Shown: positions 33,112 to 64,000 of the stretch, one piece after another | Numbering within the stretch: the first letter of the stretch is position 1 | Layout: every line of letters begins with the position of its first letter | NCBI RefSeq assembly: GCF_000143415.4 | Contig: NW_003314400.1 | Coordinates: 268,064 to 332,063 of the forward strand | DNA length: 64,000 nucleotides | Reading direction: 5' to 3' | DNA from: Selaginella moellendorffii | Lineage: Eukaryota > Plantae > Lycopodiophyta | Translations under genes and position numbers: made by a program | The notes under the pieces: generated by a model | Told to the model about the DNA's origin: nothing | What the model saw: the letters and a program-made list of their open reading frames with translations, nothing else | Databases searched by the model: none

Positions 33112-33624
33112 TCATGACTTTTTTAGGATCCATGCCGCCGCCACCATGCAGCTTCCAAAAATCGTGGAAGCACCCAAGAGACTATTACCAATCTTTGTTC
33201 CCAGCAGTGAGGCATTTGTCGTTGCTGCGTCCTCAAATGATCTCCCAAGTTCCACGCAAGCTTGCTCCAGTGGTCTCATTGCGGCGCCACCTTTTGCTAG
33301 TGATTCTCCAAGCTCAGCCCCGCCTGCTACCACAGGATTTCCAGGTGCTTCTACTGCTTCCAGTGATTTCGCAACCAGAGCGCTACCTTTTACTGCCGCA
33401 TCTAGAGAATTTCCAAACGCAGTACTGCCTGTTTCAAGAGATTTTCCAAGTGTGTGGATTGATCTTCCAAGACCTAAAGATATCGTGGTTGCGTCCATGG
33501 ATCTTCCTGCTTCCAGTAGTTCGACCCTGGATTCCAGCCTTCTTAGCGATATGATCCCGCCGAGCCCAGCTCCTATAGCTATTCCTATGCAGCCAAATTT
33601 CACATCCTGCTTCCAGGCCCCCAT
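33112..33624 (-). CDS. Gly/Ala-rich amphipathic-repeat protein with hydrophobic termini (unknown family)
   Basis: 170-aa ATG-initiated ORF with repeated LG(K/R/E)SL units and Gly-rich hydrophobic segments at both ends; resembles 48507-49178. Confidence 0.6.
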   Translation of the reverse strand: MGAWKQDVKFGCIGIAIGAGLGGIISLRRLESRVELLEAGRSMDATTISLGLGRSIHTLGKSLETGSTAFGNSLDAAVKGSALVAKSLEAVEAPGNPVVAGGAELGESLAKGGAAMRPLEQACVELGRSFEDAATTNASLLGTKIGNSLLGASTIFGSCMVAAAWILKKS

Positions 33625-33864
33625 TTGAGAATGTGCTTCGCAAACTATGTCTTTAATAGCATAGTGAGCTTTTTAAAGCTTTTTAGCAGCGCTTGAAGAG
33701 TTTTCATTCTAGCATATTCTCAGTCTATTTTAATCTTTGAACACATTTGACTCTAAAGCGTTGTGACTTTAAGGCCTAGGAAAGGATATGCGTTGATGTT
33801 AGTTTAAGCTGTCTCTGTTCATAAAAAACTTGTGCTCGATCGATCACTTGGGTTAATGAAAGCA

Positions 33865-35475
33865 ATGGGAGCGAAGGAGAGCAAGCCTCCTCTTTCTCGC
33901 AGGAGAACTCGCTCGTCCAGCGCAAAGGAGAAAGAGAATGCTCCAGAGAGTAGTCAGCAAGTAGTAGACGATCATGGTGGGAGTCCAAGCAAAAAGCCAA
34001 AGCTTTCTCAAGATGATCAACACATGGCGCTGGCGAGAGCGGTGGAAGCCATATCCGAGGAGGAAAATGCAGCAGCTCAAGTAGCCAGCGATGGATCCAT
34101 GGAGCAAGAAGCGGCAAATTCTAGCCTGGAAGTTCTCGTCACACTTCCAAATGCAAAGGTTTATCTCATGGATCACGATCAGGCTGGATCGGAAAGTGTT
34201 CTTCTCGCGTCTGGGGATCTTAGTGTCATAAGGATCGTCCAGAACGGTAGCGTGGTCGCAGCCATCGTCAAGCTCGGAGACGAGCTCCAGTGGCCGCTGG
34301 CGAAGGACGCTCCAGTCTTGAAGCTCAGCGAGAGTCACTACATTTTTAGCTTGAGACTGCCAGTAACTGTGGAGGAGGATGAAGATGAGGATCAACCTTC
34401 CAGCGAAGGGAAAGAGGAGGTCTCGTTTAAGTCAAGCGCGGAAGTTCTCAACTATGGTGTCACCCTCCCTGGAGATGCGAGCCAGGAGCTTCTCAAGGAG
34501 CTGGATTTGGCCCTCGAAAGCTATAGCTCGCTGGTGCCAGTTCCAGCGCTCCTGAAAGATCAAGACGAGGAGGTCGTGGAGATGGTGCAAGATGACGGTA
34601 ATCAAGGAATCGCTGGAGTGAAGCTCACAACGAAGAAGAAGAACTACTACTTGGAGCAACTGGCTCCCAACGCCGATGACTATCAAAGCGCGATCGCAAA
34701 GGCGATTGCCAGTGGCTCGGGGCATATCGTGCGAGGAATTCTCTGGGTGAGCGAACTAATCGCGACGCAGATCGAGCGCAGTGGATTGTTGATGCAGCAG
34801 CACATCAAACCGAAAAAGAAGCCGTCAAAGATCAGCCCCAAGACAATGAAAAACATCCGGACGTAAGTTCTTGCGTTTACTAGCTTTGACTAGTGTTTTT
34901 ACTGGCTCTTTGACTAGTGCCAAGCAAATCTCAAGGATGACTGAGACGCTCGCGAGTGGTCTTCTCTCTGGAGTTGTCACTGCCACTGAATCGATCACTT
35001 CCTCTGTGCTGAAAACTAAGCCAGGGGCTGCATTGATCGGGCTGTTGCGTGGAGAAGCCGCGATTGCCACTTTGGATGCCTTTGGTAAGCCAAGTTCTTC
35101 GCAATCTCTCCCAGAAAATGAATGATCACATTGTATGTGAGATCACAGTGAAAGTTTTCGATGCTTTGGAGCTGGCTGGGAAGAACGTCATGTCGCGAAC
35201 AACTCTAGTAACTTGCCAAGTCGTATCACACAGGTAGATTGATCACTGTTGTGCTTGATTGAATCAAGAGAAATTTTTGTTCTAGATACGGAGACGAGGC
35301 AGCCGCATTGACAAAAGAGGGGCTTTCAACCGCAGGCCATGTCGTCACTACTGCATGGAAAATCTCAAAAATTAGAACAGCCATGAATCCGGTGAAGGCT
35401 TCCACAAATCCAGTCTCGCTCAAAGCCGCCGCCATCGCCGCCGCTGAACAGCTCAAAGGCAAGAAGACCATGTAA
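33865..35475 (+). CDS. Senescence/dehydration-associated protein (ERD7/spartin-like senescence domain)
   Basis: SVLLASGDLSVIRI, QWPLAKD, LNYGVT, LAPNADDY, AIASGSGHIVRGILW, LDAF-KVFDALE; three introns, stop at 35473-35475. An alternative ATG lies at 33856. Confidence 0.9.
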
Positions 35476-35591
35476 CTCCCAGTTGAATTCTAACCGTCCG
35501 ATGGATGTTAACTTAACCCTAATTTGAAAAAACTGTCAATGAATATACCGAGTATATTTCTCGAGGTTTAGGGTTCTTAGGCATTTTGGAA

Positions 35592-36880
35592 ATGACTCGC
35601 TACGCGCAGCTCGTGATCGGGCCGGCGGGCAGCGGCAAGGTGAGTCAGATTTTGCGTTTCCTGTGCTCAATCTCTGATCTCGATCTTGCAGTCGACGTAT
35701 TGCTACCATTTGCAGCAGCATTGCAACACGATCGGGCGGAACCTGGATGTGATCAATCTCGATCCAGCGGCGGAGGATTTCAAATACGCGGTTGCTGCAG
35801 GTCTGTAAGGATTTCAGTGTTGCAAAGATATTAGTTTGGATCCATTTTTCATCAGATATAAGAGAGCTTGTTCCTCTGGAGGATGTGATGGAAGAATTTA
35901 ACTATGGACCAAACGGAGGCCTCATCTATTGCATGGAGTAAGATTTGAGTAGAGCTTTCGTTCTACACAGGGATTTCTGGCTGACCATTTCTAGTGTAGA
36001 TATCTTGAGGAGAATATGGACGACTGGCTTGCAGAGAAACTAGAAGACTATATCGACGATGACTACGTTGTCTTCGACTGTCCAGGTTTGTGGTAGTTTC
36101 TCTTCACTAGTTTTAGTTGTAGTGATTACACAGGTCAGATTGAGCTCTACACACACATCCCCGTGTTTAAAAGCCTCGTCGAGCAACTTAAGCGCTGGGA
36201 TTTTAATCTGTGCGCTGTCTACCTCCTTGATTCTCAGGTAGCTCTACTCGGATTGATTTGGTGTATCACAGGCAGAAGTTTGCTTTTGTTCTTGTGCAGT
36301 TTGTTTCTGATGTTACCAAGTATATAAGTGGATGCCTGTCGTCCTTGTCTGCTATGGTCCAACTCGAACTTCCTCATGTGAATGTCCTCACGAAGATGGA
36401 TCTCGTGGCCAAGAAAAAAGACATCGAAGAGTACGTGCTACCTATCCAGTATACTTACTTCGTTTTCACAATTTTGTGTGTAGCTACCTTGACCCTGATC
36501 CGGTTTTCCTACTGTCGGAGATGAATGCAAATACCGCTCCACGATACGGAAAGCTCAACGCCGCACTCGCAGAATTGGTTTGTTTTTTCCCACAAGTTTT
36601 GTAATTATTTACAGCTTCTGCTTCCGGCAGATTGACGATTACAGGATGGTCAACTTCGTACCTCTGGACGTCACAAGCGAAGACAGGTACGCCATTTTTT
36701 TACCTGTGGGAATTGTGTGATTGAATGGCTCCTTGCAGTTTGCAGTATCTTCTCTCCACTATCGACAATGCGATTCAGTATGGAGAGAACAGTGAAGTCA
36801 AGATAAAGGACTACGATCCTGATATCGGCGATGGCATGTCGTTCAACATGGATGCTGATATCGAGACAGATAACTTCTAA
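35592..36880 (+). CDS. GPN3: GPN-loop GTPase 3, multi-exon
   Basis: [71 protein letters not shown]. Confidence 0.93.
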
Positions 36881-36911
36881 CGTCTAGTAGTATGTAACAT
36901 ACTTTCCGGTG

Positions 36912-38846
36912 CTAATTCAGTTTCGAAATGTTGTATAGCAGTACATAGGCCGCAGAATTTCGGGGTTCTGCATCCAACAGCTGCTTTGCTGCTAGAGCAC
37001 CATATTCCTTGTCAGTGTGGACCTCACAAGCACCAAGTAGGCTCCTCCAGGCTGAAGCATCAGGTTGAACCGGCATGGCAGACATGAAGCTTGCAGCTTG
37101 CTTCACCCGGCCGGACTTGGCGAGCAAGTTGACCATGCATCCGTAGTGCTCGGGAGTTGGCTCTAGATGGTGGTCTCCCTGCATGGAGAGAAAGTAGCTC
37201 CATCCTTCGTCGGCCAGTCCGGCATGAGAGCAGGCATGAAGAACAGAAGTGAACGTAACAATATTCGGCAGCACTCCGTCCTGATTCATCGTCCAGAACA
37301 GGTTGCGAGCTCTGTCTTCTTCGCCGTTCCGTGCATAAGCCGCAACAATTGAAGACCAGGAAACAACGTTTTTGCTTGCGACACTCTCGAAAGCAGTTTG
37401 AGCGGCCTCCAAGTTTCCACAGCCTCCATACAGACATATAAGAGAGTTTTTTACGACATCCGAGCAGCATCCAGTGGCAAGACTGCGAGAGTGGACTTCT
37501 CGGCCCGTGGTAAAGTCACCAAGATTGGCACAGACAGCAAGAACAGTACCGTAAGTAACGTCGCTTGCTTTTATCCCTTCTTGATTCATTCTGTGGTATA
37601 TTTGCAGGGCCTCGAGATTGAGATCCTCCTGTGCGTTGGCTACTATCATGGTGTTCCAGGTGATCACGTTGGTAGTGCGGTTTGTTGCCTCGATAAACAC
37701 TCTCGTCGCGTTTTCGAGGCTTCCACACTTGGCATACATGTTGATGAGCGCGTTGACGACGGACGTGTGGGACAGGTATCCTCTAGCAGCAGCTTCTCTG
37801 TGGAGTGACGATCCCCTTTCCATTTTGCAGGTGCTCGAACAAGAGTCCAGGAGAGTGATGAGCGTGACATCGTTCGGCGGCATTTGATTCTCCACCATCT
37901 CCAGGTACAATGCAAACGCTTTCTCCTCGCAATGGTTCTGTGCATACGCTCCGATCATTGCATTCCAGCAAACAATGTCTTTGTCCAGTATCCGATCAAA
38001 CACCTGCCTTGCGTCTTCTACAGCCTCGCATTTTCCATAAAAGCTCACCACTGCAGTTCCCACAAACACATCCGTCTCTACTCCACTTGCAACTATCCTC
38101 TCGTGAATTGCCTTTCCTTCTACCAGTGCTCTCAGGCTCGCACAAGCCTCCAGGACGCTAATGAGCGTCACTGCATCGGGCCTGGAAAACTCTTGTTCCA
38201 TTCTTCTGTATAACTGAAGAGCTTCTAGAGGATACCCTGCGTGGGCATACGCAGAGATAATTATTGTCCATGACACAACATCTCTGAAAACCATTCTCTC
38301 GAAAACCAGCCTTGCTTCGTCCAGACTCTCACAAGTCGTATACATGTTTAGAAGTGCATTGCTTGTTATTATGTCACTCTCTAGTCCTTTAGTTCTAATT
38401 CTCTCGTGAATTGTTTTCCCCAGACTCAAGTCCCCAGTCACGGAGCAGGCACCGAGAAGGCTGATGAAGGTGATCTTGTTGGCCTCAGTGCCTTCAAGAT
38501 CCATGGACTTCAGAAGCTCCAGGCCTTCGCTCGCCTCACCATTCTGGACAAGAAGCGAGATGAGTATCGTCCAGGAGAACACGTTCCGCTGGTGGATCCC
38601 TTGAAAAGCAGCTCGAGCGTCGTCCAGGCTTCCACACCTTCCATACATTTGCACCAAGAGATTTCCCAGGTACGTATCCCCGTCGAGACCATTAGAGATC
38701 ATCTGCGAGTGAACCTGTCTGCCATCCGTGAGTGACTTGGAGTTTCCATACTGCTTGAGAAGAGCTTCGTATGTGTCTATCATCTCCTTCCTCCTCCATC
38801 TGGAATCTGCCGTGAGAGTTAGAGTTCCCGGAGTTACTGCATTCAT
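36912..38846 (-). CDS. PLS-class PPR protein with E domain, no DYW
   Basis: P-L-S triplets; ends EHYGCMVNLLAKSG...WRSLLGACEVH...AYVLLYNI. Confidence 0.92.
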   Translation of the reverse strand: MNAVTPGTLTLTADSRWRRKEMIDTYEALLKQYGNSKSLTDGRQVHSQMISNGLDGDTYLGNLLVQMYGRCGSLDDARAAFQGIHQRNVFSWTILISLLVQNGEASEGLELLKSMDLEGTEANKITFISLLGACSVTGDLSLGKTIHERIRTKGLESDIITSNALLNMYTTCESLDEARLVFERMVFRDVVSWTIIISAYAHAGYPLEALQLYRRMEQEFSRPDAVTLISVLEACASLRALVEGKAIHERIVASGVETDVFVGTAVVSFYGKCEAVEDARQVFDRILDKDIVCWNAMIGAYAQNHCEEKAFALYLEMVENQMPPNDVTLITLLDSCSSTCKMERGSSLHREAAARGYLSHTSVVNALINMYAKCGSLENATRVFIEATNRTTNVITWNTMIVANAQEDLNLEALQIYHRMNQEGIKASDVTYGTVLAVCANLGDFTTGREVHSRSLATGCCSDVVKNSLICLYGGCGNLEAAQTAFESVASKNVVSWSSIVAAYARNGEEDRARNLFWTMNQDGVLPNIVTFTSVLHACSHAGLADEGWSYFLSMQGDHHLEPTPEHYGCMVNLLAKSGRVKQAASFMSAMPVQPDASAWRSLLGACEVHTDKEYGALAAKQLLDAEPRNSAAYVLLYNISKLN

Positions 38847-39119
38847 TCTTAACTTCTAAGCCCGGCCTGGAGTTTTCTCCCCGCTATTCGTATATTCCGT
38901 CGAAGAACATTTCCAGGCCTGGAGTTGGAATGCCCCTTTCTTGATGCATGCACGTTTGTTTTGTGAGCAAGCTTTGTCCAATTGCATTGCCCACTATAAA
39001 CCAAAAAAGCCTGTCAGCCTGTCGACTCATAATTGTCGTTTTTACCTTTTATTTTTCTCTTTTGTAGGGAGTGAAGCTGAGAAGCCCAAACAGTGAATCA
39101 CACTCTATCAATCTCAAGG

Positions 39120-40007
39120 ATGAAGTTCGTCGTTGCTCTGTTCGCCGCTCTGCATTTCCTATCTACAGCTCGGGGCCAGAGCTTGCACCATGAGGAGCTC
39201 GTTTCTGCGAGAGATCCGTCGACGACCACTCTCAGTCGCTACTGTTCGAGCTTCCAGTTCAATGCCGAGGTGAACAACTTTGTTAATGGCTGGCTTGTCC
39301 CTGGGGAGTGCGTGAGTCGCATCAAGAGATACATTGAGAAGGGACAGTATGCTGCTGACGTTGAGGCCGTGATCAACCAAGCTCGAATTTATGTCAAGAA
39401 TCTCACGGTCACCAACGAGGCTAAGAAGGCTTGGGTGCTAGACATCGACGAGACTTCCCTGTCGAATGTTCCTTACTATCGGACTCACAGCTATGGGTAA
39501 GCATTGCAAGAGTTAGTTCCTTGGACTCATTGTTTTCGATGCAGTGCTACGAAATTCAATGCCACGGAATTTAACGCTTGGGTGGATCAAGCTAGCGCTG
39601 CAGCGCTCGCTCCGACACTGTCTCTCGTCAAGGAGCTCGTGAGCTTGCGCTGGAATGTCATCTTTATCACTGGAAGGCCCGAGTCTCAGCGTCAAGTCAC
39701 GGTCAAGAACTTAAAGGCCGCGGGATACAAAGGCTGGACAAAACTCCTCCTCAAGTAAGCAAAGCAAAGAAAAGCAGAGTTTTCCATCTCCATTTCCTGG
39801 AGCTGAGCAATTTGTTGTTGCAGGAGTGCTGCTCAAACCAATGCTCGGATGACCGCAATGGCTTACAAGAGCAGCTTGAGGGAGGGACTTGTGAAAGATG
39901 GGTATGAGATTTGGGGGAACATTGGTGACCAGTGGAGTGACATTTCTGGATCTGCTGCTGGTAGCAAAGTTTTCAAGCTTCCCAATCCTCTTTACTTCAT
40001 CCCGTGA
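39120..40007 (+). CDS. HAD class IIIB acid phosphatase (vegetative-storage-protein-like), 3 exons
   Basis: Signal peptide, WVLDIDETSLSN, FITGR, GNIGDQWSD, FKLPNPLY. Confidence 0.92.
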
Positions 40008-40229
40008 CCAATAGCAGTAGCAGTGGCGGAGACATCCGTTGACATCAAATTAAAAACTTTAGATCTTGTCTTGATTTATACGGTGCTGATGTGTTTAATA
40101 CGGTTGACATTATGAAGAAACGTTTATATTTAGTTAAGAAAAGCTGATGAATTGAAGCTTGTCACTCCCTAGCTCGCTGTTGTCACATTTTTAATCTTTG
40201 ATCTTGCGCCAGGAGCTTGGATCCTACAC

Positions 40230-40720
40230 AGCTCCTCCATGCGGCCAGGGGTTCCTCCTCTCTCACTCTTGCCATTGTTCTAGTTTCCAGTTCATTAGAC
40301 AACTTTGCCAATGGCTGGCTCGTTCCTCGCGAGTCTGTCGGTCGGATCAAGCGATACGGTACAATGCTGATACCAAGCAAGCTCGAGCCTACACGAGGAG
40401 TCTCACTGTTACGAACGAAACTGCGAAGGCGTGGACGTTTGATATTGACGAGACGGCCTTGTCGAATGTTATCGAGCTCAGAGGTAAGAACTTAATTGAA
40501 AAAAATTGTTTTTGTTGTCTAGAGCTTGGAAACTATGCTCCAGTGCTGCGAAGTTTAATGTCACTGCGTTCATTGCTTGGATCCAAGAGGGTCGCGCTAC
40601 AGCAATCTCTCCAACTTTATCCGTCTTCAACTGGAATCTCATCTTTATCACTGAAAGGATTGAATCCCAGCGTGATATCACAGTGAAGAAGAACAGCAAA
40701 TACAAGAGCTGCCTCGGTGA
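40230..40720 (+). pseudogene. Acid phosphatase tandem pseudogene
   Basis: NFANGWLVPRE, TVTNETAKAWTFDIDETALSN and AKFNVTAFIAW in shifting frames; no signal peptide or last exon. Confidence 0.85.
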
Positions 40721-40999
40721 CTCTTGAATCGTGAAGAAAAATAAAAGCTATAAACTCTTTCTTTAATGTTAGAGAAAGTCATATTATTTTCAAGGTGTAT
40801 AATCCTTTTGTATGAAAGAAGTTCTATTTTTCAACCCCCATGTGCCTCCTGAGAAATACTACTGCAACAAAATCTGTTCCATACTTATGAGGAAATTAAA
40901 ACGCTAAGGGTTTTACCACATCAAGCATACCATAAGTTTTAAGCGCTTCACAAATTAGACTATAGTATCCACCACCAGGATAGAACCTATCAAAATTAA

Positions 41000-42340: not shown

Positions 42341-42864
42341 TACAGCAAAACATGAGAGTAACAGAGCGTCAAGTAACACGTACAAGATCACCACGCACAA
42401 GATAGAAGACATCCCCCACAAATAACACCAAAAAATGCAACCAGTATCAGGCTATGCCAGCAACCCACTAATGAGCAACCAGAGATCTGTAAGCCAGCAA
42501 GCAGCAACAACTGACTAAAGGCGTGTCAGTCAAATGACAAGAGACGCTACAGGATTAGCTAAATCATAGGAAAGAGTAGCTTACTCTGACGCTTCATCCT
42601 CCTTACTCCTCTTCTTTCCTATGCAGGCATTCCTTGTCCATTCAGTATTGAAGATGAGAACCTCCTAATGCCAGTCTTTTCTCCACTTCCTCGTCAATCT
42701 CCTGTTCTATGGTCTTGACCTGTGCAGAAACTCCTCCTGGATCTATGGGCTCAAAACCACTAAAAGGTTGACGGGTTTATGTAGATGAGAAATGAGCCTT
42801 TTGTTCAAGTGTCATCGTTAATCAAAGTTTTATATATTTCAGATTTTTGAAAAAGAAAAAGAGT

Positions 42865-46588: not shown

Positions 46589-47914
46589 ATGACACAGGTA
46601 CGCTGCGCGATCGCGCCTTAGGGTTGTGGAATTGATTCTATCGCCTCGTCTGCCTTGTTCCAGTCGGATAATCGAGCTGCGTCTGGAACGAAGCGAGCGC
46701 GCTCGGAAGGTAAGGCCGGCGCGTTGGCATTCTTCCGAGAAATCTTCTTTTCTCACTGGAAATTCTCTTGTCTAGGACCTCGCGGCGATGGCGATTGGAC
46801 GTGCCCCTTGTGTGGCAATGTCAATTTCGCGTTTAGAGCTACTTGCAACATGAGAAAATGTGGAGCGAGCAAGCCAGCTGATATCACTCGGGTGGGAGGA
46901 GGGCCGATTGGACCGCTACCGTATGACCAATCGCCGGCGCTCTTCATGGCCGGGCCTGGAGTTCCTCCTCCAATTCAAGTGGGGATCAATGGAGGATACA
47001 CGCAGGTGCCGATGCCTCCTCCCGTATCAACGATTCCATACGACTATGGTGGTGGAATGAATCTACAAACGACTTATAACCCGATTCCACTACCCGGTGC
47101 TTATAATCCCGCGCTAGGTGAGAACAATCGTTGGTTTTGGTGATTCTTAGCTCTCCTTTTTTTTACAGTTCATGCGGTACATCATCATGAAGGTGTGCAC
47201 TTAGGATCTGGCTTTGGAGCTCCGGTCGTGGACGGCTATGGAATGGGCATGACTATGGTTCCTCCACCTGTAAGTGTTTCGCGTCTTTTGGAGATTCCGG
47301 AGGAAGTAAAGCTTTTCGTCTTTAGTTTTCGGTGATGCAGATTCCAGGGCCTCGGCCGGGTGTACAAATCGAAGAGAATGGCTCACGGAAGCGTAGAGGC
47401 GGTACGCAGAAAGCCTGTCCTTCGTACAACCTCTCAATCTTTTTTTTTGTTTGTTGCAGGGCCGGAAGGCTCGGAGGGCGATTGGATATGTCCGAAGTGT
47501 GGCAACTCAAACTTCGCATTCAGGACCTTCTGCAACATGCGCAAATGCGGCACTCCCAAACCCGCGGAACCGGTTTGTCATTCATTCGTTTCTTCTGCTG
47601 GTTGTCACCACAGCCTAGTGTCTCTTTCGTTTTCTCGTCTGTGTGGCTCAGGTCCCTCGCATTGCACCTCAAAAGGCTAACTCACGTAAGCTCTCTCTTT
47701 CGATATCTCTCGCGTGGATTGGATGGATACCAACACAAAAACTGGTTTGTTTCGTGTTGCAGAAGGTCCAACCCCGGAAGGAAGTTGGACGTGCGATGCT
47801 TGTGGTAATGTAAATTATCCCTTCCGAACGAAATGTAATCGCAGGAACTGTGGCGTTGACAAACCCGCTGATGCAAAGCTTACAACGAAAACGTCTCCTC
47901 CTCCATCGGACTAA
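46589..47914 (+). CDS. RanBP2-type zinc finger protein (three fingers), multi-exon
   Basis: GDWTCPLCGNVNFAFRATCNMRKC, GDWICPKCGNSNFAFRTFCNMRKC, GSWTCDACGNVNYPFRTKCNRRNC. Confidence 0.9.
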
Positions 47915-47997: not shown

Positions 47998-48380
47998 CAG
48001 CTCTTGCGAGCTGGTATGCCGACCATCAGAGACAGTGCTGACTTGGTTCGTTTACCGCTTGGGGCTTCCCGTGTTGTGCTGCGAGCAATTCCATTCGATC
48101 TGATTGATGGGTTTTTCGTGTCTCTGCCCCTGTTTCAGTACTGTCGTCGAGCTTGTGGAGGTCCGAAAAAAAAAAAAACCAAAAGATGAAAAAGAAAAAC
48201 ACTGTCAACGTTTTTCCGCCTGGTCCGTCGTTGGTGTCTCTTCTCAAGTCTCAGTTTTCTGATCAGGCCTCTCGTCTCCGTCGTCGTCATGGTCGCGTAT
48301 ATATACATTATGTACAGACGGCGAATGTACGTTTTTTTCTTGGTATACATATGGTCGAGAGGGTGAGGAGAGATTTTTTT
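47998..48380 (+). repeat. Non-coding segment duplicated at about 59334-59690 and, more diverged, at about 61390-61640
   Basis: agctcttgcgagctggtatgcc.accatcagagacagtgctgacttggttcg and the downstream sequence are nearly identical at 59334-59690. Confidence 0.9.
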
Positions 48381-48506
48381 TGGGGCCTTTTACAATCGCC
48401 TTTTACAATCGCCCTTTTTGGGGCGATTGTAAGATTATAGTTTAAGAGATTGGTATATTCTTTCAATAGGGTTTAAGCTATTGTTCGCGCATAGTGCTTC
48501 TTCGAA

Positions 48507-49178
48507 ATGGTTTCCGCCGTCCGGCTCGCTGGTGCTGTTGCGACGGGAGTTGTGATAGGTGGAGTGGCGGCTATCTATGGCGGGGCTGTGAAAGCCGCAG
48601 TGGATTCCATCAGCACCGGGATCAAGGAAGCAGCTGAGGCGGGGGGCGGAGCTCTAGGGAAATCCCTGGAGCTGAAAGAGGCCCTGGCAGAAGGAGGAAA
48701 GGCGCTGGAGCTGAAAGACGCCCTAGCAGCAGGAGGAAAGTCGCTGGATTTTGGTGGATCTCTTGGGACGGGGCTGTGTGCCCATGGCCTCAATAGCGTT
48801 GGCCAGGGGATCAGCTCGGGCCTCAATGGCCTTGGCAAGGGGGTCGGCTCTGGCCTTAATGGCATTGCCATGGGGATCGGCTCGGGCCTCGGCTCGATTG
48901 GCGTGGGGATCGGGATTGCTGGCATCGTCATTGGGCGCGGGATCTGCAAGCTTGCGGCTTCACAGAAGACCCTCGTCGAGAAGCTCGTCTCTGCAGTGGT
49001 CGTGCGCTCGGAGCCGGACAGGTCAGGCTCCGGAAAGCTCTCCAAGACGCAGCTCAGCTCCTCCGGCAACCCTGGAGAGGCACAGCTCGGCCTCTCCAAC
49101 CCTGGCGAGGCGCACGCTCAGCTCTCCGACCCTGGCAAGGCGCACGCTCAGCTCTCCGACCCTGGCAGCGAGATGTGA
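48507..49178 (+). CDS. Glycine-zipper / amphipathic-repeat protein (unknown family)
   Basis: 223-aa ORF: hydrophobic N-terminus, 13-aa repeats (GKSLELKEALAEG), 11-aa repeats (GLNGLGKGVGS), Gly-rich hydrophobic segment, and 10-aa C-terminal repeats (HAQLSDPGKA). Confidence 0.75.
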   Translation: MVSAVRLAGAVATGVVIGGVAAIYGGAVKAAVDSISTGIKEAAEAGGGALGKSLELKEALAEGGKALELKDALAAGGKSLDFGGSLGTGLCAHGLNSVGQGISSGLNGLGKGVGSGLNGIAMGIGSGLGSIGVGIGIAGIVIGRGICKLAASQKTLVEKLVSAVVVRSEPDRSGSGKLSKTQLSSSGNPGEAQLGLSNPGEAHAQLSDPGKAHAQLSDPGSEM

Positions 49179-50142: not shown

Positions 50143-51680
50143 ATGAATGCAGTAACTCCGGGAACTCTAACTCTCACGGCAGATTCCAGATGGAGGAGGA
50201 AGGAGATGATAGACACATACGAAGCTCTTCTCAAGCAGTATGGAAACTCCAAGTCACTCAGACGGGTTCACTCACAGATGATCTCTAATGGTCTCGACGG
50301 GGATACGTACCTGGGAAATCTCTTGGTGCAAATGTATGGAAGGTGTGGAAGCCTGGACGACGCTCGAGCTGCTTACCGAGGGATCCACCAGCGGAACGTG
50401 TTCTCCTGGACGATACTCATCTCGCTTCTTGTCCAGAATGGTCGATGCAGTGACGCTGATTAGCGTCCTGGAGGCTTGTGCGAGCCTGAGAGCATTGGTA
50501 GAAGGAAAGACAATTCACGAGAGGATAGTTGCAAGTGGAGTAGAGACGGATGTGTTTGTGGGAACTGCAGTGAGCTTCTACGGAAAATGCGAGGCTGTAG
50601 AAGACGCAAGACAGGTGTTTGATCGGGTAATGGACAAAGACATTGTTTGCTGGAATGCAATGACCGGAGCGTATGCACAGCACCATTGCGAGGAGAAAGC
50701 GTTTGCATTGTACCTGGAGATGGTGGAGAATAAATTGCCGCTCATCACGCTCCTGGACTCTTGTTCGAGCACCTGCAAAATGGAAAGGGGATCGTCACTC
50801 CACAGAGAAGCTGCTGCTAGAGGATACCTGTCCCACACGTCCGTCGTCAACGCGCTCATCAACATGTATGCCAAGTGTGGAAGCCTCGAAAACGCGACGA
50901 GAGTGTTTATCGAGGCAACAAACCGCACTACCAACGCGATCACCTGGAACACCATGATAGTAGCCAACGCACAGGAGGATCTAAATCTCGAGGCCCTGCA
51001 AATATACCACAGAATGAATCAAGAAGGGATAAAAGCAAGCGACGTTACTTACGGTACTGTTCTTGCTGTCTGTGCCAATCTTGGTGAATTTACCACGGGC
51101 CGAGAAGTCCACTCTCGCAGTCTTGCCACTAGATGCTGCTCGGACGTCGTAAAAAACTCTCTTATGTGTCTGTGTGGAAACTTGGAGGCCGCTCAAACTG
51201 CTTTCGAGAGTGTCGCAAGTAAAAACGTCGTTTCCTGGTCTTCAATCGTTGCGGCTTATGCACGGAACGGCGAAGAAGACAGAGCTCGCAACCTGTTCTG
51301 GACGATGAATCAGGACGGAGTGCTGCGGAATATTGTTACGTTCACTTCTGTTCTTCATGCCTGCTCTCATGCCGGACTGGCCGACGAAGGATGGAGCTAC
51401 TTTCTCTCCATGCAGGGAGACCACCATCTAGAGCCAACTCCCGAGCACTACGGATGCATGGCCAACTTGCTCGCCAAGTCCGGCTGGGTGAAGCACGCTG
51501 CAAGCTTCATGTCCGCCATGCCGGTTCAACCTGATGCTTCAGCCTGGAGGAGCCTACTTGGTGCTTGTGAGGTCCACACTGACAACGAATATGGTGCTCT
51601 AGAAGCAAAGCAGCTGTTGGATGCAGAACCCCGAAATTCTGCGGCCTATCTACTGCTATATGAAACTGAATTAGCACCGG
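50143..51680 (+). pseudogene. Inverted duplicate of PPR 36912-38846
   Basis: Near-identical sequence with a frameshifting deletion of about 360 bp at about 50442 and several small deletions. Confidence 0.9.
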
Positions 51681-51704
51681 AAAGTATGTTACATACTACT
51701 ACAA

Positions 51705-53022
51705 GTTAGAAGTTATCCGTCTCGATATCAGCATCCATGTTGAACGACATGCCATNNNNNNNNNNNNNNNNNNNNNNNNNNNNNNNNNNNNNNNNNNNNN
51801 NNNNNNNNNNNNNNNNNNNNNNNNNNNNNNNNNNNNNNNNNNNNNNNNNNNNNNNCGATAGTGGAGAGAAGATACTGCAAACCGCAAGGAGCCATTCAAT
51901 CACACAATTCCCACAGGTAAAGAAATGGCGTACCTGGCTTCGCTTGTGACGTCCACTGGTGACGAAGTTGACCATCCTGTAATCGTCAATCTGCCGGAAG
52001 CGGAACTTGTAAATAATTACAAAACTCTTGGTAAAAAACAAACCAATTCTGCGAGTGCGGCGTTGAGCTTTCCGTATCGTGGAGCGGTATTTGCGTTCAT
52101 CTCCGACAGTAGGAAAACCGGATCAGGGTCAAGGTAGCTACACACAAAATTGTGAAAACAAAGTAAGTAATATTGGATTGGTAGCACGTACTCTTCGATG
52201 TCTCTTTTCTTGGCCACGAGATCCATCTTCGTGAGGACATTCACATGAGGAAGTTCGAGTTGGACCATAGCAGACAAGGACGACAGGCATCCACTTATAT
52301 ACTTGGTAACATCCGAAACAAACTGCACAAGAACAAAAGCAAACTTCTGTCTGTCATACACCAAATCAATCCGAGTAGGAGCTACCTGAGAATCAAGGAG
52401 GTAGACCGCGCACAGATTAAAATCCCAGCGCTTAAGTTGTTCGACGAGGCTTTTAAACACGGGGATGTGTGTGTAGAGCTCAATCTGACCTGTGTAATAC
52501 CACTACAACTAAAACTAGTGAATAGAAACTACATAAACCTGGACAGTCGAAGACAACGTCATCGTCGATATAGTCTTCTAGTTTCTCCGCAAGCCAGTCG
52601 TCCATATTCTCCTCAAGATATCTACACTAGAAATGGTCAGCCAGAAATCCTTGTGTAGAAACTAACACCACGAAAGCTCTACTCAAATCTTACATGCAAT
52701 AGATGAGGCCTCCGTTTGGTCCATAGTTAAATTCTTCCATCACATCCTCTAGAGGAACAAGCTCTCTTATATCTGATGAAAAATAGATCCAAACTAAAAT
52801 CTTTGCAACACTGAAATCTTTACAGACCTGCAGCAACCGCGTATTTGAAATCCTCCGCCGCTGGCTCGAGATTGATCACATCCAGGTTCCGCCCGATCGT
52901 GTTGCAATGCTGCTGCAAATGGTAGCAATACGTCGACTGCAAGATCGAGATCAGAGATTGAGCACAGGAACCGCGAAATCTCACTCGCCTTGCCGCTGCC
53001 CGCCGTGGGCGTAGCGAGTCAT
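51705..53022 (-). pseudogene. Inverted duplicate of GPN3 (spans an N gap)
   Basis: A deletion in exon 1 removes part of QLVIGP and shifts the frame; first donor GT changed to GC; further indels. Confidence 0.88.
51756..51855. other. Assembly gap
   Basis: Run of N. Confidence 1.
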
Positions 53023-54675: not shown

Positions 54676-57600
54676 CTAATCGACTCATCCACTTCACTAC
54701 ACTACCTCACTCAAACTGTGTATTCTTTCCACCATAAAGCGACTAGCTCCTCTTCTCTCTAGCAAAAAAGGAAGACAAAGCACTAGAATCGATCGGGAAT
54801 ACAAAAGGTTGACATACATTGTCCACTCTTGCAAGAGTTAATTAGAAGCAATATCATTTTAGACAAGCTTTCAGGAAGTTAGGAAATACATTGACATGGA
54901 TGGAGCAAGTATCTCAAATCCAGCCTCGACTATCTGTATAATCTCTTGACCTGCAATTTGTATGAGTAGTGATATTTCCCAGGTAACATAAGAGGTCAGC
55001 ATTGGTGCTCGAAAGAAGCTCAAGGTTAGGTAAGAAGATTGGAAGCAAGAAAGTCATCACGTACCAGATGGGTTTCTGGATTCAAGGCCATTGTATTCAT
55101 GGCATAGCGCATCACCACCATTACGATTTTTCTGTCCTGGAAATCATCTGGGTAGATGAGGATCAAAAGGAAAAGGAATGTCGAAAGGACTTCGCGATCG
55201 ATCAGCTGGAGCTTCCAAGACATCTCCCTATAACATCCAGCAGCGGCTCCATGCTCTTGCACGTAGAAATCTTTGGTGCGTAGGTACAGCGGCGAGGAGA
55301 GCTTCCTCCACAAAGGCGGAAGAATCCAGGTCGATCGATCGAAATAGAGATCGATTTCAAAACACACGGCCTGAAACAAAAAAATTTAGTTGGGTCTCTG
55401 GCTGTGGATTCGAACCTGTGACCTTGTCAATATTTTTCTTTATTCTATATCCGTGACCTTGCCAATAATTTTCTTTATTTTAGCCGGATATCCGGCCAAC
55501 AGGTTCCCATGCAAAGCGTTCATTAGTAGCTTCTTAATGTATCTCTAATTTTTAAATGAATCGCAGTCTCGCTCGTGTTCGCTGCTCACGGACAGCGTAA
55601 TTTCCGTAGAGAAGTTCCAATTTCTTGCGAAGTGTTCTCTGGAAGCGCTCCAAGTTTCCTAGGAAAAAGGTTATGATTGAGCATTTACTGCTCTTCAATG
55701 CCTGAATCTCGGGTACTGTTCTCAGATCTCTGCTTACCCTGGAGATTTTGCGAGTAAATACTCAACCATCTGTTTAAGATCCCCAATCTGCCAGATTTCT
55801 GCTAGCAAACACTCTTAAAACTCTCATGTCACCAGCAACTCTTGCAACTTCGCAGCTGTGACGAAGATTAACCTTGACAAATGCAAAGAGTTTTTGGCAA
55901 AGCTCATCTTGCCAAGAAATCCGAGCTGGATCCGGTAGAAGTTTTCTGAGCGTTTAACGGTGTGCTCCAGGAGACAAAAGCTGACAAATGTACAAGGAAA
56001 AGGCTGTGACGACATTGAAGCGAGACAATTCCATGCCTCGAGAGATTCCTCAATTCAAGCAAAGCGGGCGAAAAATGTCTAGATAATGCTTGTAGTCTGA
56101 CAGGACAGTTGAAGAGAAGTACTCAATCGCTGGGTAGCTGCCCTGCAAAATTTCTGCTAGTAAACACTGTTAAAACTCTCATGTCACCAGTGCGAAGATC
56201 GAGTCCCTCTCATTAGAAACTTTAAAAAACAAAAAGTTTTAGTACTGTGGCGATTCTTTGCCTTATCCCTGGAATGAGGACACAAGAGCAGTATATAAGC
56301 CAGGGTCGGAAAGGATACATACTTACCTGGAGGGTCTTGGTGATCATGAAGGCCAATGGCCTGTTGGCCGGCCTACCATCTTCCCAAAGTGGAGGAGTGG
56401 ATGTCGTAATTTGTGGGAGTTGAGGGCTCGCATATGCGTGGCCCTCTCCAAATTCAAGCTCTTAAGATGGAAACGTTGATTTCTGCTAAACAAGAGTTAG
56501 AACAGCAACTTGAATCTTTCAATCTTTATGATCTAACAAACAAGTTTTCAAGTCTCTGCGATCCCTTGCTGGAGAAAGTGAAGGACATATCGTCGTTTTC
56601 GATGTAGCCACCAAAGTCACTGTTCTTGGCTTGCCAGGTGCCTGACTATGAAGAGCACGGTGTCTAGATCGTCCAGTGCTTATAAGCAAAGCAAAGAACA
56701 AGAAATCAAAAGGAGCTTATGTGTGTGAACTAGTGGTGCTCGAATGCTGAATCCTGTGATCCACGCAAGAACTTTGTCAATGACATGATAGCAGAGAGTA
56801 AGACTTACCTGTAGCATGAAATCGACTCTAACATCGGGACTTCCAGACAGCCTTTCCATCACCATACTACCATAGCTTTTCTTCTCTTTAGTGGGACTCT
56901 CCTCATCTACTGCAAGATCATTCGTAACTGTGTTAGAAGCGAATGCCAATGACACAAGAAGCATACATTTTCTATCCGAGCTTATCTTGAGCTCTGATAG
57001 CAAAACTTACAATGCATCCCAATATGTAGAGGCTTGCCTCCTTTGTGGTATGGAATAAACTCCGGCTTCTTGTCGACGAAATCCTTTGATATCAGAGGTT
57101 CCGCTCTGTAATCACGAAGAAAGGATAGATGTAAATGCTTCTAACACAAAAGTATATTGATACCTGTAAGTGACAGGATCAAATGGTTGAAATATGCTCA
57201 TCATTTTCCTGCATGCTGGCACTTCTTCTTTGATGCCTTCATCTTCCCATTACTCATGACCCATTCCTACGCAAATGCATTCAATATATGTTGCAACGTC
57301 CGTAAATCACACACGTACCCGATTCAAAGTGTACATTTCGGAGCTGAGAAACAATCCCAGTGGTGGTCCAACTGCGAAAAACGTGTCCACCTACAAGAAA
57401 GAAACTTATCAACAGCAAAGAATCAAGCCACCATGGTGTATCTGAAACAAAAGTTTTGTGTACTGAATTCGAGGGGTATGGTATTTTCAAGAAGGAGCTC
57501 GCTCTCCTTGTTTTGTTCCCAATGCTGCATTTGTTCCCAGTGACTTGAGTTCCTTTCTCAAGATCTCAACCTGCAAGCACAAGCTAGATCATATAGAAAT

Positions 57601-59754
57601 GCCACAGGAGATCACGTTCTTTTACCTCTGAATGTAATGCCTTGACTCTCTTCGTCTCCATGTCACTATCAGTGTCAGCTTCTGTAGTTGTACTAGAGTC
57701 TGATCCTTCCTTGCTACTGTCTCTTGAATCATGATCCGAGGAGTGACCAGGTTGCTCTGGCTCCGGTGGACAATGAAGCTCTCAAAACAGCTCTTGTGCA
57801 AGTGCAAATTCACCTTGGACCACCATATTACATATAGCAATTGCATCAAAGATATCCCCATATTCCATAAGAAATGCAAGATCATTAGGCATCTGACCAG
57901 CCTTCAGTGTTTTCCACCACACATTCCGAGTTATCAACCATGACATTCTTTCACTTTGCTTCCTTTACCACCTTCATTGCATTGCCAAAACTCGCTTTGC
58001 AACAGTGGTAAAGCATTGACCTGTAACATCACATTCATCTAACAAACAGATGAAACGATTTAGATGGATGAAATTTCATAATTAACTACCAATGTAAATC
58101 AGCTGGAGGCTTATACTTTCATTTGCTAAGATGCTTCTGTAACCTGTTCATTAGTCAAAGAATCCCTTGCCATCTCTATGATGATCTTCTTATAGATATT
58201 GTTTTTTTTTTTTTTTGTCTTTCTTTTTTGCTCTTGGGGTTAAAGACACTAGAACTTTAACTGCCTTTTCCAGTAAATTAGAGGTTAAGAATGCATTGAT
58301 GTGAAGGGTGACAGTTTCTTTTTCCTGATAACTCCAACATTCTGAGAAAAAAAGATTCTTTGAATTTCATGGCAGAAAAAACCTGAAATTCATGTTTGCT
58401 CAGTGATCGATGGGGTTTAAGCTCATGAAAGAAAGATAAAAAGATGGCCTCTATGCATCAATTCATATCTGGAAAAAGTTTGAAGTAGTATTTCAAGTAA
58501 GCGGTGGAGTAGCCACTTTCCTTGTCCATCATGAGTCCTCAAAGTTACCACATGCTTGTAGTGGAAGGACACTCCATGGTTTGTTTGAGTTGTGTGGACT
58601 CAAACAAGAAAAACTTACTTGGCACATTGAATAGAGCCTTTTGGATTTTCTGTGTGAACTTTGTAGCTTAGTGTCTAGTTGGAGTAGCTTTTGATTCAAA
58701 TACTCAATGTGACAGAGCAAAGAGGAATAGAAAAAATGCAAAGCACTCATTTAAATAGCATGCTTGTACCACCCTAGAAGGGTCCAATGAACAAACTAGT
58801 CACTCAATCCATATGGCATGGAATATCTCTGATCAACACAGCTTTGTCACTCTTTACTTGCCAGTAGTAGCCTCAAGATGTGAAACAATCATGTGCATGT
58901 GACCCAACCTCACAGTGCACTCCAAATGCCAACATAAGATCTCTAAACATGCTCACTCCAAAGTACTCAAGATGCTGAAAGAAACACATTTACTGTTTAA
59001 ACAAAAGAACCCATATTCATAGAATAAATATAAACACACTTCAATCCAAGCCACACTCAATACTTGTAAGAAACAAAACTTCTTTAGTCTAGAGCACACT
59101 CCAAGAAACATTGTTATATAGAATCCTTGAGGGGTGGGGGTGAGGCCCAACCTAACCCTCACTCCCTATTGTTTCTTGCTTTTATTCTCCAACTTTGAGA
59201 TTCTTGAATGTGTTGAGAAGTGAATCCATGAATATGTAAGGATGAAAATTTAATTAGAGCAGTAAAGTTATACCACACACACTTGTAATTCATGAGCAAT
59301 GACATGGATTAGGGCTTGTGAGGTGGTAGAGTTAGCTCTTGCGAGCTGGTATGCCAACCATCAGAGACAGTGCTGACTTGGTTCGTTGTTGTGCTGCGAG
59401 CAATTCCATTCGATCTGATTGATGGGTTTTTCGTGTCTCTGCCTCTGTTTCAGTACACTACTTGTCGTTGAGCTTGTGGAGGTCTGAAAAAAAAAAAAAA
59501 CCAAAAGATGAAAAAGAAAAACACTGTCAACATTTTTCTGCCTGGTCTCTCCTCAAGTCTCAGTTTTCTGATCGGGCCTCTCGTCTCCGTTGTTGTCATG
59601 GTCACGTATATATACATTATGTAATGTATGTTTTCTTCTTGGTATATATATGGTCATGGTCAAGAGAGTGAGATGAGAGCTTTTTTGGTGTCCAAACCTT
59701 TACCTTGAAAATGAAAGTATCTTTTATAGTATATTCTAGGGTTTTAGGGTTTAT

Positions 59755-60327
59755 TTGAAATTTAGGGCTTCGTTCCCTGCGGCTGGAGAATCACTTGCCT
59801 TCAAGGAGGCGATCCAAGCTGGAGGGACATCTCTAGGGGGCTCCCTTGATCTGAATGCTCTCGGTGGATCCTTGGGTGGATCTCTTGGAAAGACAGGAGT
59901 GGCACTTGGTGAGCAGCTGAGCACTCAAGTGAAAGGTGGACTCTGTGCCCTGGGTGGAAAGCATTGGAGCAGGGATTATCCTCTTTCGATTCAAATCCTC
60001 AACATTCGAGAGAAGCGAAAGGAGTCAACAGAATAAGCAAGGACCAATGGAAAAGGGCTGCAGAGAGTCAAAACTTTAAATAGCATGCTAACAAAGGGGC
60101 TACACATAGGGTTACATTTTGAGATGGAGAATGCAGGGGTCGGGATCGCGATAAGGGATGGTCTCTATTGTCATGGTAGAGCGCTGCGTATGGGGTTTGG
60201 GATATGTGGCCTTTGTATTGGCATCGGTCTTGCTTGTATTGGCCATGCCATAGGAAAATTTGCCAACAGCGTGGGCAAAGTTGCTGACTCCATGAGAAAG
60301 CTGTTGGAAACTAGTAGTTATTTGTAA
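59755..60327 (+). pseudogene. Disrupted member of the glycine-zipper family
   Basis: AAGESLAFKEAIQAGGTSLGGSLDL and GFGICGLCIGIGLACIGHAIGKFANSVGK resemble 48507-49178. No ATG-initiated N-terminus; split over two ORFs. Confidence 0.7.
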
Positions 60328-61643
60328 TTCTTATTAAATCTAATTTCCAACAAGTATACGTATTGGAACTTTTAAGTTCGTTTATAGTGGATAGGATAGG
60401 GCGTGTTTGATCTCTAATTCTGTTACAAGTCATTTCCCAGGCACTGCAAGTTGGTTTTAAGGCTTAATTTGTGACTGGAAAAAAAAGAGTCACATCATGC
60501 CTCACTAGTGGGAGGGACGTTCTCTTATTATCAAAGGGTTTCTAAGGTGATCTCAGGTACAGCTGTGTTGAACCTGCACTCCACAAAGTTGGACCTTTCC
60601 CAAACTTGGGGGGCAGCTGCACACACGTGTGGTTGGTCCATGTACATATACGTGAATATAAAACTTTTCATGTAAAATGGAAAGTTTTTGTAAGTTATGA
60701 ATGGATTTTTGTTTTGGTATGGTCATGCATGGTTTTGCATGTTATATATAAAAATCCAGCGTTACATTAGAGAGAGAGAGAGTGGGGTACATGTGACCAT
60801 AGCCACATCAGTACCACACAAAACCATGATTTGTGCATAGCATGAATTGCACTCTTGGTCACACTGGCTCAACAAATGAAGTTTATTTTGCAATCTAATA
60901 ATTTGTGAATGGATGAGGAAACATTTTTGCTGTGCAAAAACCCATTTTATGCACATTTTTTATGGTGAGCTATGCCCATGATCTGCACCAGCTCAACACT
61001 ATCCCATAGGCAAAGCCCTACAATCGCTTTATGATCAAGTGGTTCCTCAACAAATAAGTAAGTTCTTGCATGGACATGATAGAAAGCTACAAAAATAAAA
61101 ATTTTGCTACATTTATTAGTGTAATTAAACTCTTGCTAAGGTTAAAAGCACCTTTTTGACAGTTTCTTGAGAGAATTGCTCACCTTCAAGGAGGTAGGGA
61201 AAAAAACCCTCATGAATCTTCATAATTCCATGTGTTGTTGAAATAGCTTTTAATTCAAATTCTCAACCTTGTAGAAAAATTGTTAATACAAGAACAAGAT
61301 TTAAGAATGAGGAAAATGAAACAAACAAGAGTGAAGAACTAGAAAATTGCCAATGGAAGAAATCAATTAATCTCAATCTTCAGGATGCGGCAATCCCATC
61401 CAATGTGTCTATAATAGATTGGCAAGTGATTCATTTATTTTTTCTATTGGTTTTCACTGTAACCGTGTGGCTCAGTTTTTTGACTGTCTGTTGGTTGTGT
61501 ATATATACATGACGATAAATATACGTTTTCCTTATGTTTTTTTAAATCTCTCTCGATAAGAACAATAAAATATTGATATATTCTTTCAAAGATTTTACTT
61601 TTAAAGTTTAACCCATTGCTTGTGTGTTTTTGAAAAAAAAAAA

Positions 61644-61745
61644 ATGGTTTCTTCTTTCGGGATCGTAACCGCAATAGCAACCAGAGTTGTCATTGGTGGT
61701 GTGGCGTTGTTTTGTGGCACGGATGCAAATTTGAAATGGGGATAG
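61644..61745 (+). pseudogene. Truncated N-terminus of another glycine-zipper family copy
   Basis: MVSSFGIVTAIATRVVIGGVALFCG...stop versus MVSAVRLAGAVATGVVIGGVAAIYG at 48507. Confidence 0.75.
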
Positions 61746-61999
61746 CTTTCTTCTAAAGGCTAAATTTCTAGGACATTTTTTGTACGAAAGTCCCAAAAAT
61801 TTCTCAAGCAATAAATGTTGTTTTTTATAGCATATTCATTTTTCTTAAGTGTGGTCCATTTTAATAGATTTTTACTTCACAAAATTTTGTTGACTATCAA
61901 TTCAAATTTAGAATTGATTCAATGTCTATTAACCCAATTATCAACAAGTGTATTTCTACCTATGGGTATCTAAACTTTATTGTGAACCATTAAAAGTTT

Positions 62000-64000
62000 T
62001 TACAATAGCATTTTTGCTTAATATTGCATAAAAGTTTAGCAATTATCTAGTAAATAAAATTTTATAAATATTTTACAGGTTATAATGCTCAGAATTTGTG
62101 TTTAGCATGGATAGGCAGACTATCTCTCTATATAGGAAAAATTCTAATATTATTTACTTTTTGTATAGGTGACTCCATAAATATAAGTCTACAGATCTTT
62201 TTATAGGGGATAAGGCTAAATTTATTATTTATCATATTATATTTTAACCACCTCACACAAATTCTAAAAATATTTACTAAGTTATGCAATCCTTGACTTA
62301 ATTATTGAAATGTTTTTACCTCCTATACAATTAAAAAAATGTTTGTTTTTCACACAAAATAATCCATTCTAAATTTGCAACGAGAATTGTTATATGTTCA
62401 TCAACACTAAATTCAAAAAAGGGGGTGAAATACTCGTAGGGAAATCCTTAATACCTCAAAGTGAGACCATTAATTATTTTGTGTGAAAAAAAACATGAAT
62501 TTGATGTTTTGCATCGATTCTTTTTATATTGTTAATGTCATAAAAAAGTTTTATAAATAATACTAACAAAGCTGTAGTTTTCTTGGAANNNNNNNNNNNN
62601 NNNNNNNNNNNNNNNNNNNNNNNNNNNNNNNNNNNNNNNNNNNNNNNNNNNNNNNNNNNNNNNNNNNNNNNNNNNNNNNNNNNNNNNNNNNNNNNNNNNN
62701 NNNNNNNNNNNNNNNNNNNNNNNNNNNNNNNNNNNNNNNNNNNNNNNNNNNNNNNNNNNNNNNNNNNNNNNNNNNNNNNNNNNNNNNNNNNNNNNNNNNN
62801 NNNNNNNNNNNNNNNNNNNNNNNNNNNNNNNNNNNNNNNNNNNNNNNNNNNNNNNNNNNNNNNNNNNNNNNNNNNNNNNNNNNNNNNNNNNNNNNNNNNN
62901 NNNNNNNNNNNNNNNNNNNNNNNNNNNNNNNNNNNNNNNNNNNNNNNNNNNNNNNNNNNNNNNNNNNNNNNNNNNNNNNNNNNNNNNNNNNNNNNNNNNN
63001 NNNNNNNNNNNNNNTTATGTGAAAAAAAGTATGAATTTGATGTTTAGGATTGATTATTTTTATATTGCTAATATCATAAGAAAATTTTACAAATAATGTT
63101 GGAAAAGCTGTAGCTTTTTTAAAAATCATTATATTTAATTTTTCAACAATATGATGTAATAGTGAAAATCCTTTTTGTAAAAGATATGGCAAAATTTGTT
63201 ATTAGTCATATCACAGTCTAACTACCTTGCATAAATTCTTAAACTATTTACCAAGTTATACAACCTTTGACATAATTAATATTATAATATTTATAAATCT
63301 CTTTCTTAAAATCTTTATACCTAATAAAGGTTTTAATAAAAAAATTATCATTAAACTTTTCTATTTACCATACAATTCAAATAATTGATAGAAATGATAT
63401 TGCAACAATAATTGTCATGCGTTTTTATCAACACCAATGTTAAAGAAGGGGGTGAAGCTTTAAGAAAATCCTTAGACTTCAAAGATGCCATGGCAATAAT
63501 AGGGAAGTCACCTAATGTAATTATTTTTGATAATTACATAATAATTTATTTTAATACAAATGATATTACAACAGGAATTGTTATGTGTTGTCATTAGCAT
63601 CAAGTTTAAGAAAAAAGGGGTTATGGTCTTAGAAAATCTTTACACCTCAAAGATGTCATAGATTATTTTGTATGAAAAAACAAATATGAACTTGGGTTTG
63701 GAATATGTTTGGCATTAGTTTTGTTTATATTTTTAATATTGTAAAAACGTTTATTAAATAATGTTGGAAAAACTAATGACTTTAACTTTCTTAGAAATCA
63801 TTATATTTAATTTTTCAACAATATCATATGATAGTGATGATTCTTTTTATTGAGGATAAAGCTAGATTTATTTTTAGTTATCTCATATTTTAATCACTTC
63901 ACAAAAATTCTTAAAATATTTACTAAGCTATACAACCCTCAACTTAATTAATTATTATCTCTCTTAAATATTTATATTTAATAATTTTTTTAATGGGAAA
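62000..64000 (+). repeat. AT-rich tandem array (period about 550-650 bp) of eroded glycine-zipper gene copies
   Basis: Recurring blocks at about 62480, 63015 and 63665 (tgtgaaaaaaa..atgaa.ttg) and at about 62400, 63427 and 63592 (atca.cac.aa.tt.aa.aagggg). Confidence 0.8.
62589..63014. other. Assembly gap
   Basis: Run of N. Confidence 1.

Follow-up and report, generated by a model that had tools for sequence, protein, structure and literature searches.

Does the genome of the lycophyte Selaginella moellendorffii hold, on contig NW_003314400.1, an undescribed multi-copy family of repeat-built membrane proteins? The question arises from 64,000 nucleotides of this contig (forward strand, positions 268,064 to 332,063; hereafter the window, numbered from its first base), in which a first-pass annotation singled out an open reading frame (ORF) at 48507–49178, here called gene A, together with several presumed relatives. 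The window is S. moellendorffii nuclear DNA, and the proteins of gene A and of a second ORF, D (33112–33624), are publicly recorded as predictions from the same species. We conclude, with a probability of about 0.6, that gene A is a single-exon gene of Selaginella, taxonomically restricted and part of a tiny local family, and that it encodes a predicted small, glycine-rich, two-helix membrane protein. In place of the multi-copy protein family that had been proposed, the window contains one intact gene, which is annotated and has an allele, one decapitated paralogue, and debris.

Gene A and its parts are the following:
48507..49178, plus strand: gene A, predicted single-exon coding sequence (CDS) of 223 amino acids; allele of XP_024540810.1 (LOC112349867), with a stop-free frame and the top codon usage
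48507..48602, plus strand: residues 1–32 of A, first hydrophobic segment, Gly/Ala-rich, predicted signal anchor or first transmembrane helix (KD19 1.89)
48666..48748, plus strand: 39-bp tandem repeat encoding 13-residue repeats (Tandem Repeats Finder, TRF: 2.1 copies, 90% match)
48785..48913, plus strand: 33/66-bp tandem repeat encoding 11-residue GLNxxGxGxxS repeats that continue into the second hydrophobic segment (TRF: 3.2 copies, 80% match; hydrophobic moment, muH, 0.4–0.5)
48864..48959, plus strand: residues 120–151 of A, second hydrophobic segment, very Gly-rich, with GxGxG and GxxxG runs (KD19 1.93; motif list)
49043..49167, plus strand: 30-bp tandem repeat encoding 10-residue repeats of the polar C-terminal tail (TRF: 3.3–4.1 copies, 81–90% match), without secondary structure in the structure model

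The public record XP_024540810.1, an 'uncharacterized protein LOC112349867' of 219 amino acids from S. moellendorffii, is 96% identical to A, from which it differs by an in-frame deletion of four residues in a glycine run and by five substitutions. It is the allele of gene A on the other haplotype, and the gene model is thus already public. The peptide repeats of A are encoded by DNA tandem repeats with periods of 39, 33 and 30 bp, all multiples of three, and such in-frame repeats occupy about half of the CDS in TRF. The two hydrophobic segments were called by Kyte–Doolittle hydropathy. The peptide contains 12 GxxxG and nine (G/A/S)xxxGxxxG motifs, clustered at residues 97–143; runs of the latter type start at residues 115, 119 and 121, in or abutting the second hydrophobic segment, and at residue 10 in the first. 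By hydropathy and motif positions, A would therefore belong to the transmembrane glycine-zipper motif class, whose definition reportedly goes back to Kim et al. in 2005. Read as a helix, the 11-residue stretch is amphipathic, with hydrophobic residues at positions 2, 5 and 9 of each unit; it comprises about three units, is nearly uncharged and has glycine at 5 of 11 positions. The earlier description of a hydrophobic N terminus, 13- and 11-residue repeats and a GxxxG-rich hydrophobic helix is thus borne out by the ORF, TRF, hydropathy and motif counts; its claim of amphipathic repeats holds for the 11-mers and only weakly for the 13-mers (muH 0.15–0.2). The AlphaFold model of A is all-helical and of low confidence (predicted local distance difference test, pLDDT, 46), with helices at residues 2–60, 69–116 and 127–166 followed by a disordered tail. 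Fold matches to models of such low confidence would carry no meaning, and the structure matches from the ESM Atlas (model pLDDT 0.56) were disregarded as generic long-helix proteins.

The frame of gene A contains no stops against 6.7 expected in shuffled sequence (P 0.001), and no other frame is open like that. It also has the best codon-usage score among the six frames, within the range of the well-supported genes of the window. The strongest argument for a coding history comes from a second copy, B, which lies farther downstream and shares with A an element ahead of the coding part:
59740..60327, plus strand: copy B, an old paralogue lacking an ATG and the first hydrophobic segment, with an in-frame TAA at 60034–60036; recognized by shuffles, DNA identity and frame openness
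47999..48383, plus strand: upstream element of A, common to B (blastn 81% with gaps)
59334..59688, plus strand: twin of the upstream element ahead of copy B, in decay through GC-to-AT transitions that fall mostly on CpG sites

Comparisons with A were each evaluated against 2,000 composition-matched shuffles; the pieces of B on either side of the stop (B1 and B2) were searched and aligned separately, and possible introns in B were judged by eye. Both pieces exceed the shuffles in Smith–Waterman (SW) score (p ≤ 0.0015), and the coding DNA of B is about 61% identical to that of A (z 5.3). A single stop interrupts the 195 codons of B in the homologous frame, whereas the remaining five frames have 6–11 stops and shuffles 11.3 (P 5e-5). 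Moreover, B keeps the order of parts found in A: repeats, a GLCA motif, a Gly-rich hydrophobic helix and an amphipathic end. Because the homologous frame of B was kept open at this level of divergence, coding constraint appears to have acted on A and B over a long period.

The upstream element suggests a younger event. Over its length (385 bp at A), 324 of 342 aligned bases are identical between the two loci, far above the identity of the adjoining coding parts, which points either to gene conversion in the recent past or to a mobile insertion common to both loci. From A to B the element shows 16 transitions, 13 from GC to AT, mostly at CpG sites, and three from AT to GC (p 0.02). Missing from copy B are the approximately 200 bp in which A carries the last part of its leader, the ATG and the first hydrophobic segment. 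Most simply, a recent exchange, by gene conversion or unequal recombination, would have put the upstream region of A onto the old paralogue and removed the start of B; instead of such an exchange, a mobile element may have inserted ahead of both copies. Rfam gave no match in the shared element. The element opens with a short palindrome (AGCTC..GAGCT) and contains an A-run. A multi-exon gene (46655–47914) that encodes several RanBP2-type zinc fingers lies directly upstream of gene A. Between its stop and the duplicated element there are 85 bp, a spacing from which a portion of its likely 3′ untranslated region would have been duplicated into the B locus.

Further remnants, together with an assembly gap, lie in DNA that becomes more AT-rich towards the end of the window:
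61487..61745, plus strand: copy C, a 5′ stub left by erosion, comprising an upstream remnant, an ATG and 33 codons, with 14 of its first 25 residues identical to A
62377..62468, plus strand: tail fragment T0, approximately codons 27–59 of A (DNA alignment)
63394..63512, plus strand: tail fragment T1, approximately codons 24–67 of A (tblastn E 0.007; 0 of 2,000 shuffles; 66 of 74 bases match with transitions collapsed)
63560..63661, plus strand: tail fragment T2, approximately codons 24–60 of A (DNA alignment)
62589..63014, no strand: assembly gap in the AT-rich tandem array (units of approximately 655 bp), with flanks that are not contiguous

Between copy C and A there are three short DNA matches in collinear order, which reach from the upstream region to within the first codons. 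For B1, B2, C and T1, only 0–3 of 2,000 shuffles reach the observed score and collinear DNA matches are present as well, so the relatedness previously proposed for 59755–60327 and 61644–61745 stands. The 'eroded units' at 62–64 kb proved a different matter: the similarity is real (63427–63510 lies above shuffles), but these are fragments of about 100–130 bp, not gene copies. All three match the same region of A (codons ~24–67) and are embedded in an AT-rich repeat, whose unit of approximately 655 bp recurs from 63016 to 63671. E-values from transition-collapsed blastn are invalid, as the alphabet has two letters, and only long or collinear matches were kept. The tandem array spans 62025–64000 and runs past the end of the window; one unit bears both T1 and T2. 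Where the array is interrupted by the assembly gap, the 106 bases before it (62479–62584) match the 106 after it (63015–63120) at 82%; its borders are therefore the same part of successive repeat units, neither contiguous nor in frame, and the gap lies within the array with nothing readable across it.

Base composition follows the same course. The GC content falls from 55% in A to 45% in B, 37% in the spacer, 33% in C and 22–25% in the tail, where the observed-to-expected CpG ratio is 0.16–0.31 compared with 0.76–0.87 elsewhere. In the tail fragments, G-to-A and C-to-T changes number 24–30 against 4–5 in the reverse sense; as the scoring was lenient towards transitions and A is GC-rich, the direction alone counts. 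This pattern fits the decay of methylated cytosine in silenced repeats. Fungal-type repeat-induced point mutation, for which the (CpA+TpG)/(ApC+GpT) index should be about 1.03 or less, was rejected for the tail, in which the index is 1.2–1.4 and CpG is strongly depleted. We also considered and dropped a giant-virus origin of the AT-rich end: the one Selaginella family that PMC4083422 traces clearly to nucleocytoplasmic large DNA viruses is an exoribonuclease family, and nothing in that report resembles the locus.

How far does the family extend beyond the window? A word-indexed search of 5.8 billion proteins returned A and its allele and nothing further, and a profile word search that included B, C and T1 likewise found only these two. 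An exhaustive phmmer (HMMER) search of 1.84 billion (1.84e9) representative proteins added three matches to the allele, with E-values of 1e-5 to 5e-4. These (P0005–P0007) were rejected as relatives: they are unrelated hypothetical proteins without a Pfam domain, and the GLxxxGxG repeats alone align. One of them, P0006, is an unnamed metagenomic protein of 440 amino acids with long Gly/Lys repeats of the GKG-x-SS type followed by a multi-pass hydrophobic domain; it aligns with A through the repeats alone (E 1.4e-4). At E ≤ 1, Pfam matched none of A, D or B1, and B2 only to DUF2964 (E 0.17); A had no NCBIfam match at the same threshold, no PDB sequence below E 0.25 and no feature match in the ESM Atlas. 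We found no paper naming the gene identifiers and no described family for A. The absence of a named domain asserted in the first-pass annotation thus holds, as does its picture of rapid, lineage-specific turnover of copies, in that the protein searches return the allele alone as a true relative.

The most distant relative that had been proposed, ORF D, fared less well:
33112..33624, minus strand: ORF D, a separate annotated orphan with hydrophobic ends; allele of EFJ18973.1 / D8S9J9

Like A, D has hydrophobic Gly-rich ends and a helical middle rich in Gly, Ala, Ser and Leu (AlphaFold model pLDDT 54), in which a G-x-S-L-acid motif is repeated; it lies 15 kb from A, and its SW score against A falls in the top 2–3% of shuffles (44–65 of 2,000 reach the observed score, p ~0.02–0.03). 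These features would suit a very distant member of the A family. Against this, BLASTP gives E 0.16 and hhalign a probability of 0.8%, there is no DNA similarity to A in the ORF or its flanks, and the protein searches contained no third sequence linking the two. D itself has no relatives in the word search and no look-alike in the ESM Atlas. Membership of D in the family is therefore doubtful; its likeness to A is not convincingly above composition, and D appears to be a different orphan of similar make-up. The strand opposite D (33146–33628, plus) is likewise open, for 160 codons, which makes openness alone weak evidence here; the annotated frame of D has the better codon score.

The surroundings are those of a land-plant genome, with genes for PPR proteins, a Senescence-domain protein, a RanBP2-type zinc-finger protein and a HAD acid phosphatase. 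In a self-comparison of the window, an inverted segmental duplication pairs 33890–38873 with 54675–50116 at 93–96% identity, and each arm bears a PPR gene and a Senescence-domain gene. The PPR gene of the first arm is whole (a 644-amino-acid ORF at 36912–38846); the second arm lacks 359 bp corresponding to 38179–38537 of the first, which breaks its PPR frame into the ORFs 50143–50463 and 50288–51709. An assembly gap at 51756–51855 sits in this second arm, between the PPR and Senescence-domain genes and outside the A family. Its flanks correspond to 36831 and 36764 of the first arm and are thus collinear, with about 66 bp missing. Two neighbouring ORFs at 39093–40686 are of the HAD class B acid phosphatase type, and the second looks degenerate.

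Several points weigh against a restricted, functional gene A. Long ORFs occur in its other frames (174 amino acids on the minus strand and 155 in another plus frame), a consequence of the GC-rich repeats. The five amino-acid differences and one indel between the alleles are, by our estimate, near what neutral drift might give, so that current constraint on A is unproven. Other lycophyte genomes are perhaps thin in the protein libraries, and 'restricted' may then mean restricted to the genus, not the species. The structure models are poor for both A and D, and topology and oligomerization are read from hydropathy and motif counts alone. Some of these points recur in the idea that A is a proto-gene or an annotation artefact, whose frame a GC-rich in-frame minisatellite keeps open by chance and which has no selected function. 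Half of the coding sequence is indeed young tandem repeat, A is an orphan with a low-confidence model, other frames of its DNA hold long ORFs, and the neighbouring copies are all dying. Chance openness, however, does not account for B, which kept both its frame (one stop against 11.3 expected) and the succession of repeats, GLCA motif and Gly-rich hydrophobic helix despite its divergence from A, nor for codon usage being best in the ORF frame of A. We regard this alternative as unlikely, although it is the most serious of those concerning the nature of A.

Comparison with known systems bears on what such a protein might do. A resembles transmembrane glycine zippers in the (G/A/S)xxxGxxxG runs of its hydrophobic helix, which are expected to favour tight helix–helix packing. 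It differs from the Pfam glycine-zipper families (Gly-zipper_Omp, Gly-zipper_OmpA, Gly-zipper_YMGG and Rick_17kDa_Anti) in matching none of their profiles at E ≤ 1, in being a plant nuclear gene and in having a helix that is also GxGxG-spaced and partly built from a 33-bp DNA repeat; none of A, D or B reached the gathering score of PF13488, PF13436, PF13441 or PF05433. The zipper runs and the rapid turnover of copies are what a defensive or pore-forming family, whose glycine zippers build a channel, would show. Yet no glycine-zipper, toxin or defence profile matches, no structure supports a channel, and a single gene is intact; the turnover is accounted for by the decay of pseudogenes and by slippage in the minisatellites, and not by diversifying selection. 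The pore-forming role suggested earlier is thus very improbable. Scarcely better placed is a lipid-surface binder, acting at lipid droplets or in desiccation protection in the manner of perilipin, alpha-synuclein or group 3 LEA proteins. A shares with these the period of 11 and the amphipathic pattern described above, but its units are few, Gly-rich and almost without charge, are young DNA minisatellite units and merge into a hydrophobic segment. At E ≤ 1 there is no match to LEA_4, Perilipin, Synuclein, Oleosin or Apolipoprotein, and A does not resemble an oleosin-type lipid-droplet protein, with its long hydrophobic hairpin and proline knot, as segment 120–151 contains no proline. We found no evidence favouring a toxin, pore or lipid-droplet role for A over other membrane roles.

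A further comparison is with Mic10-type proteins, small hairpin membrane proteins with glycine-rich helices that are conserved across eukaryotes. Like them, A is small and has two hydrophobic helices, one extremely Gly-rich, suggesting oligomerization; in contrast, A is an orphan, its loop of about 90 residues is repeat-built and we found no sequence similarity. Plant glycine-rich proteins (GRPs) share with A a hydrophobic N-terminal leader, short Gly repeats from in-frame DNA repeats and fast lineage-specific change, whereas A is only 21% glycine, lacks GGX-type blocks and has a hydrophobic helix in its interior. We know of no GRP family profile to test against. Subunit c of F-type ATP synthase also has a Gly-rich transmembrane helix and appears among the faint matches (PDB E 0.54 for A; NCBIfam E 0.04–0.8 for B); with 10–14 bits against cut-offs of 110–135, this likeness is compositional only.

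On the reading we prefer, that of a restricted membrane-protein gene, A would be a Gly/Ala/Ser/Leu-rich protein in which hydrophobic Gly-rich helices at 1–32 and 120–151 enclose a helical middle and are followed by a disordered repeat tail. From its sequence features, it probably inserts as a helical hairpin whose Gly-rich second helix self-associates through small-residue faces to give a small oligomeric membrane protein. Since young in-frame minisatellite accounts for about half of the coding sequence, the length and sequence of the protein would change quickly by slippage, and the four-residue deletion in the allele is a likely instance. Copy B would long have been a coding gene, and would have lost its start codon and first helix only recently, in the exchange that brought the near-identical copy of the 385 bp upstream of A. 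Copy C and the three tail fragments would be debris in DNA that becomes increasingly AT-rich and CpG-poor towards 64 kb, as deamination of methylated cytosine predicts. More tentatively, the locus could be viewed as one young membrane-protein family caught at three stages: a working gene written by a minisatellite, an old paralogue recently decapitated, and older copies dissolving into a methylated AT-rich repeat.

Gene A is a minor lineage-specific gene and not a large undescribed system, and the finding is of modest weight, adding neither a defence system nor a lipid system that is new. Orphans account for a large share of the genes in plants, and their history can seldom be read; here, an intact gene, a broken paralogue and debris all lie within 16 kb, and the repeat origin of a Gly-rich membrane helix is legible in the DNA. 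The locus is therefore a handy case for the birth and loss of small membrane proteins. Provided that A is expressed and functional, it would serve as a clean example, in a plant, of an orphan membrane protein built from repeats, with a Gly-rich helix born of a 33-bp DNA repeat.

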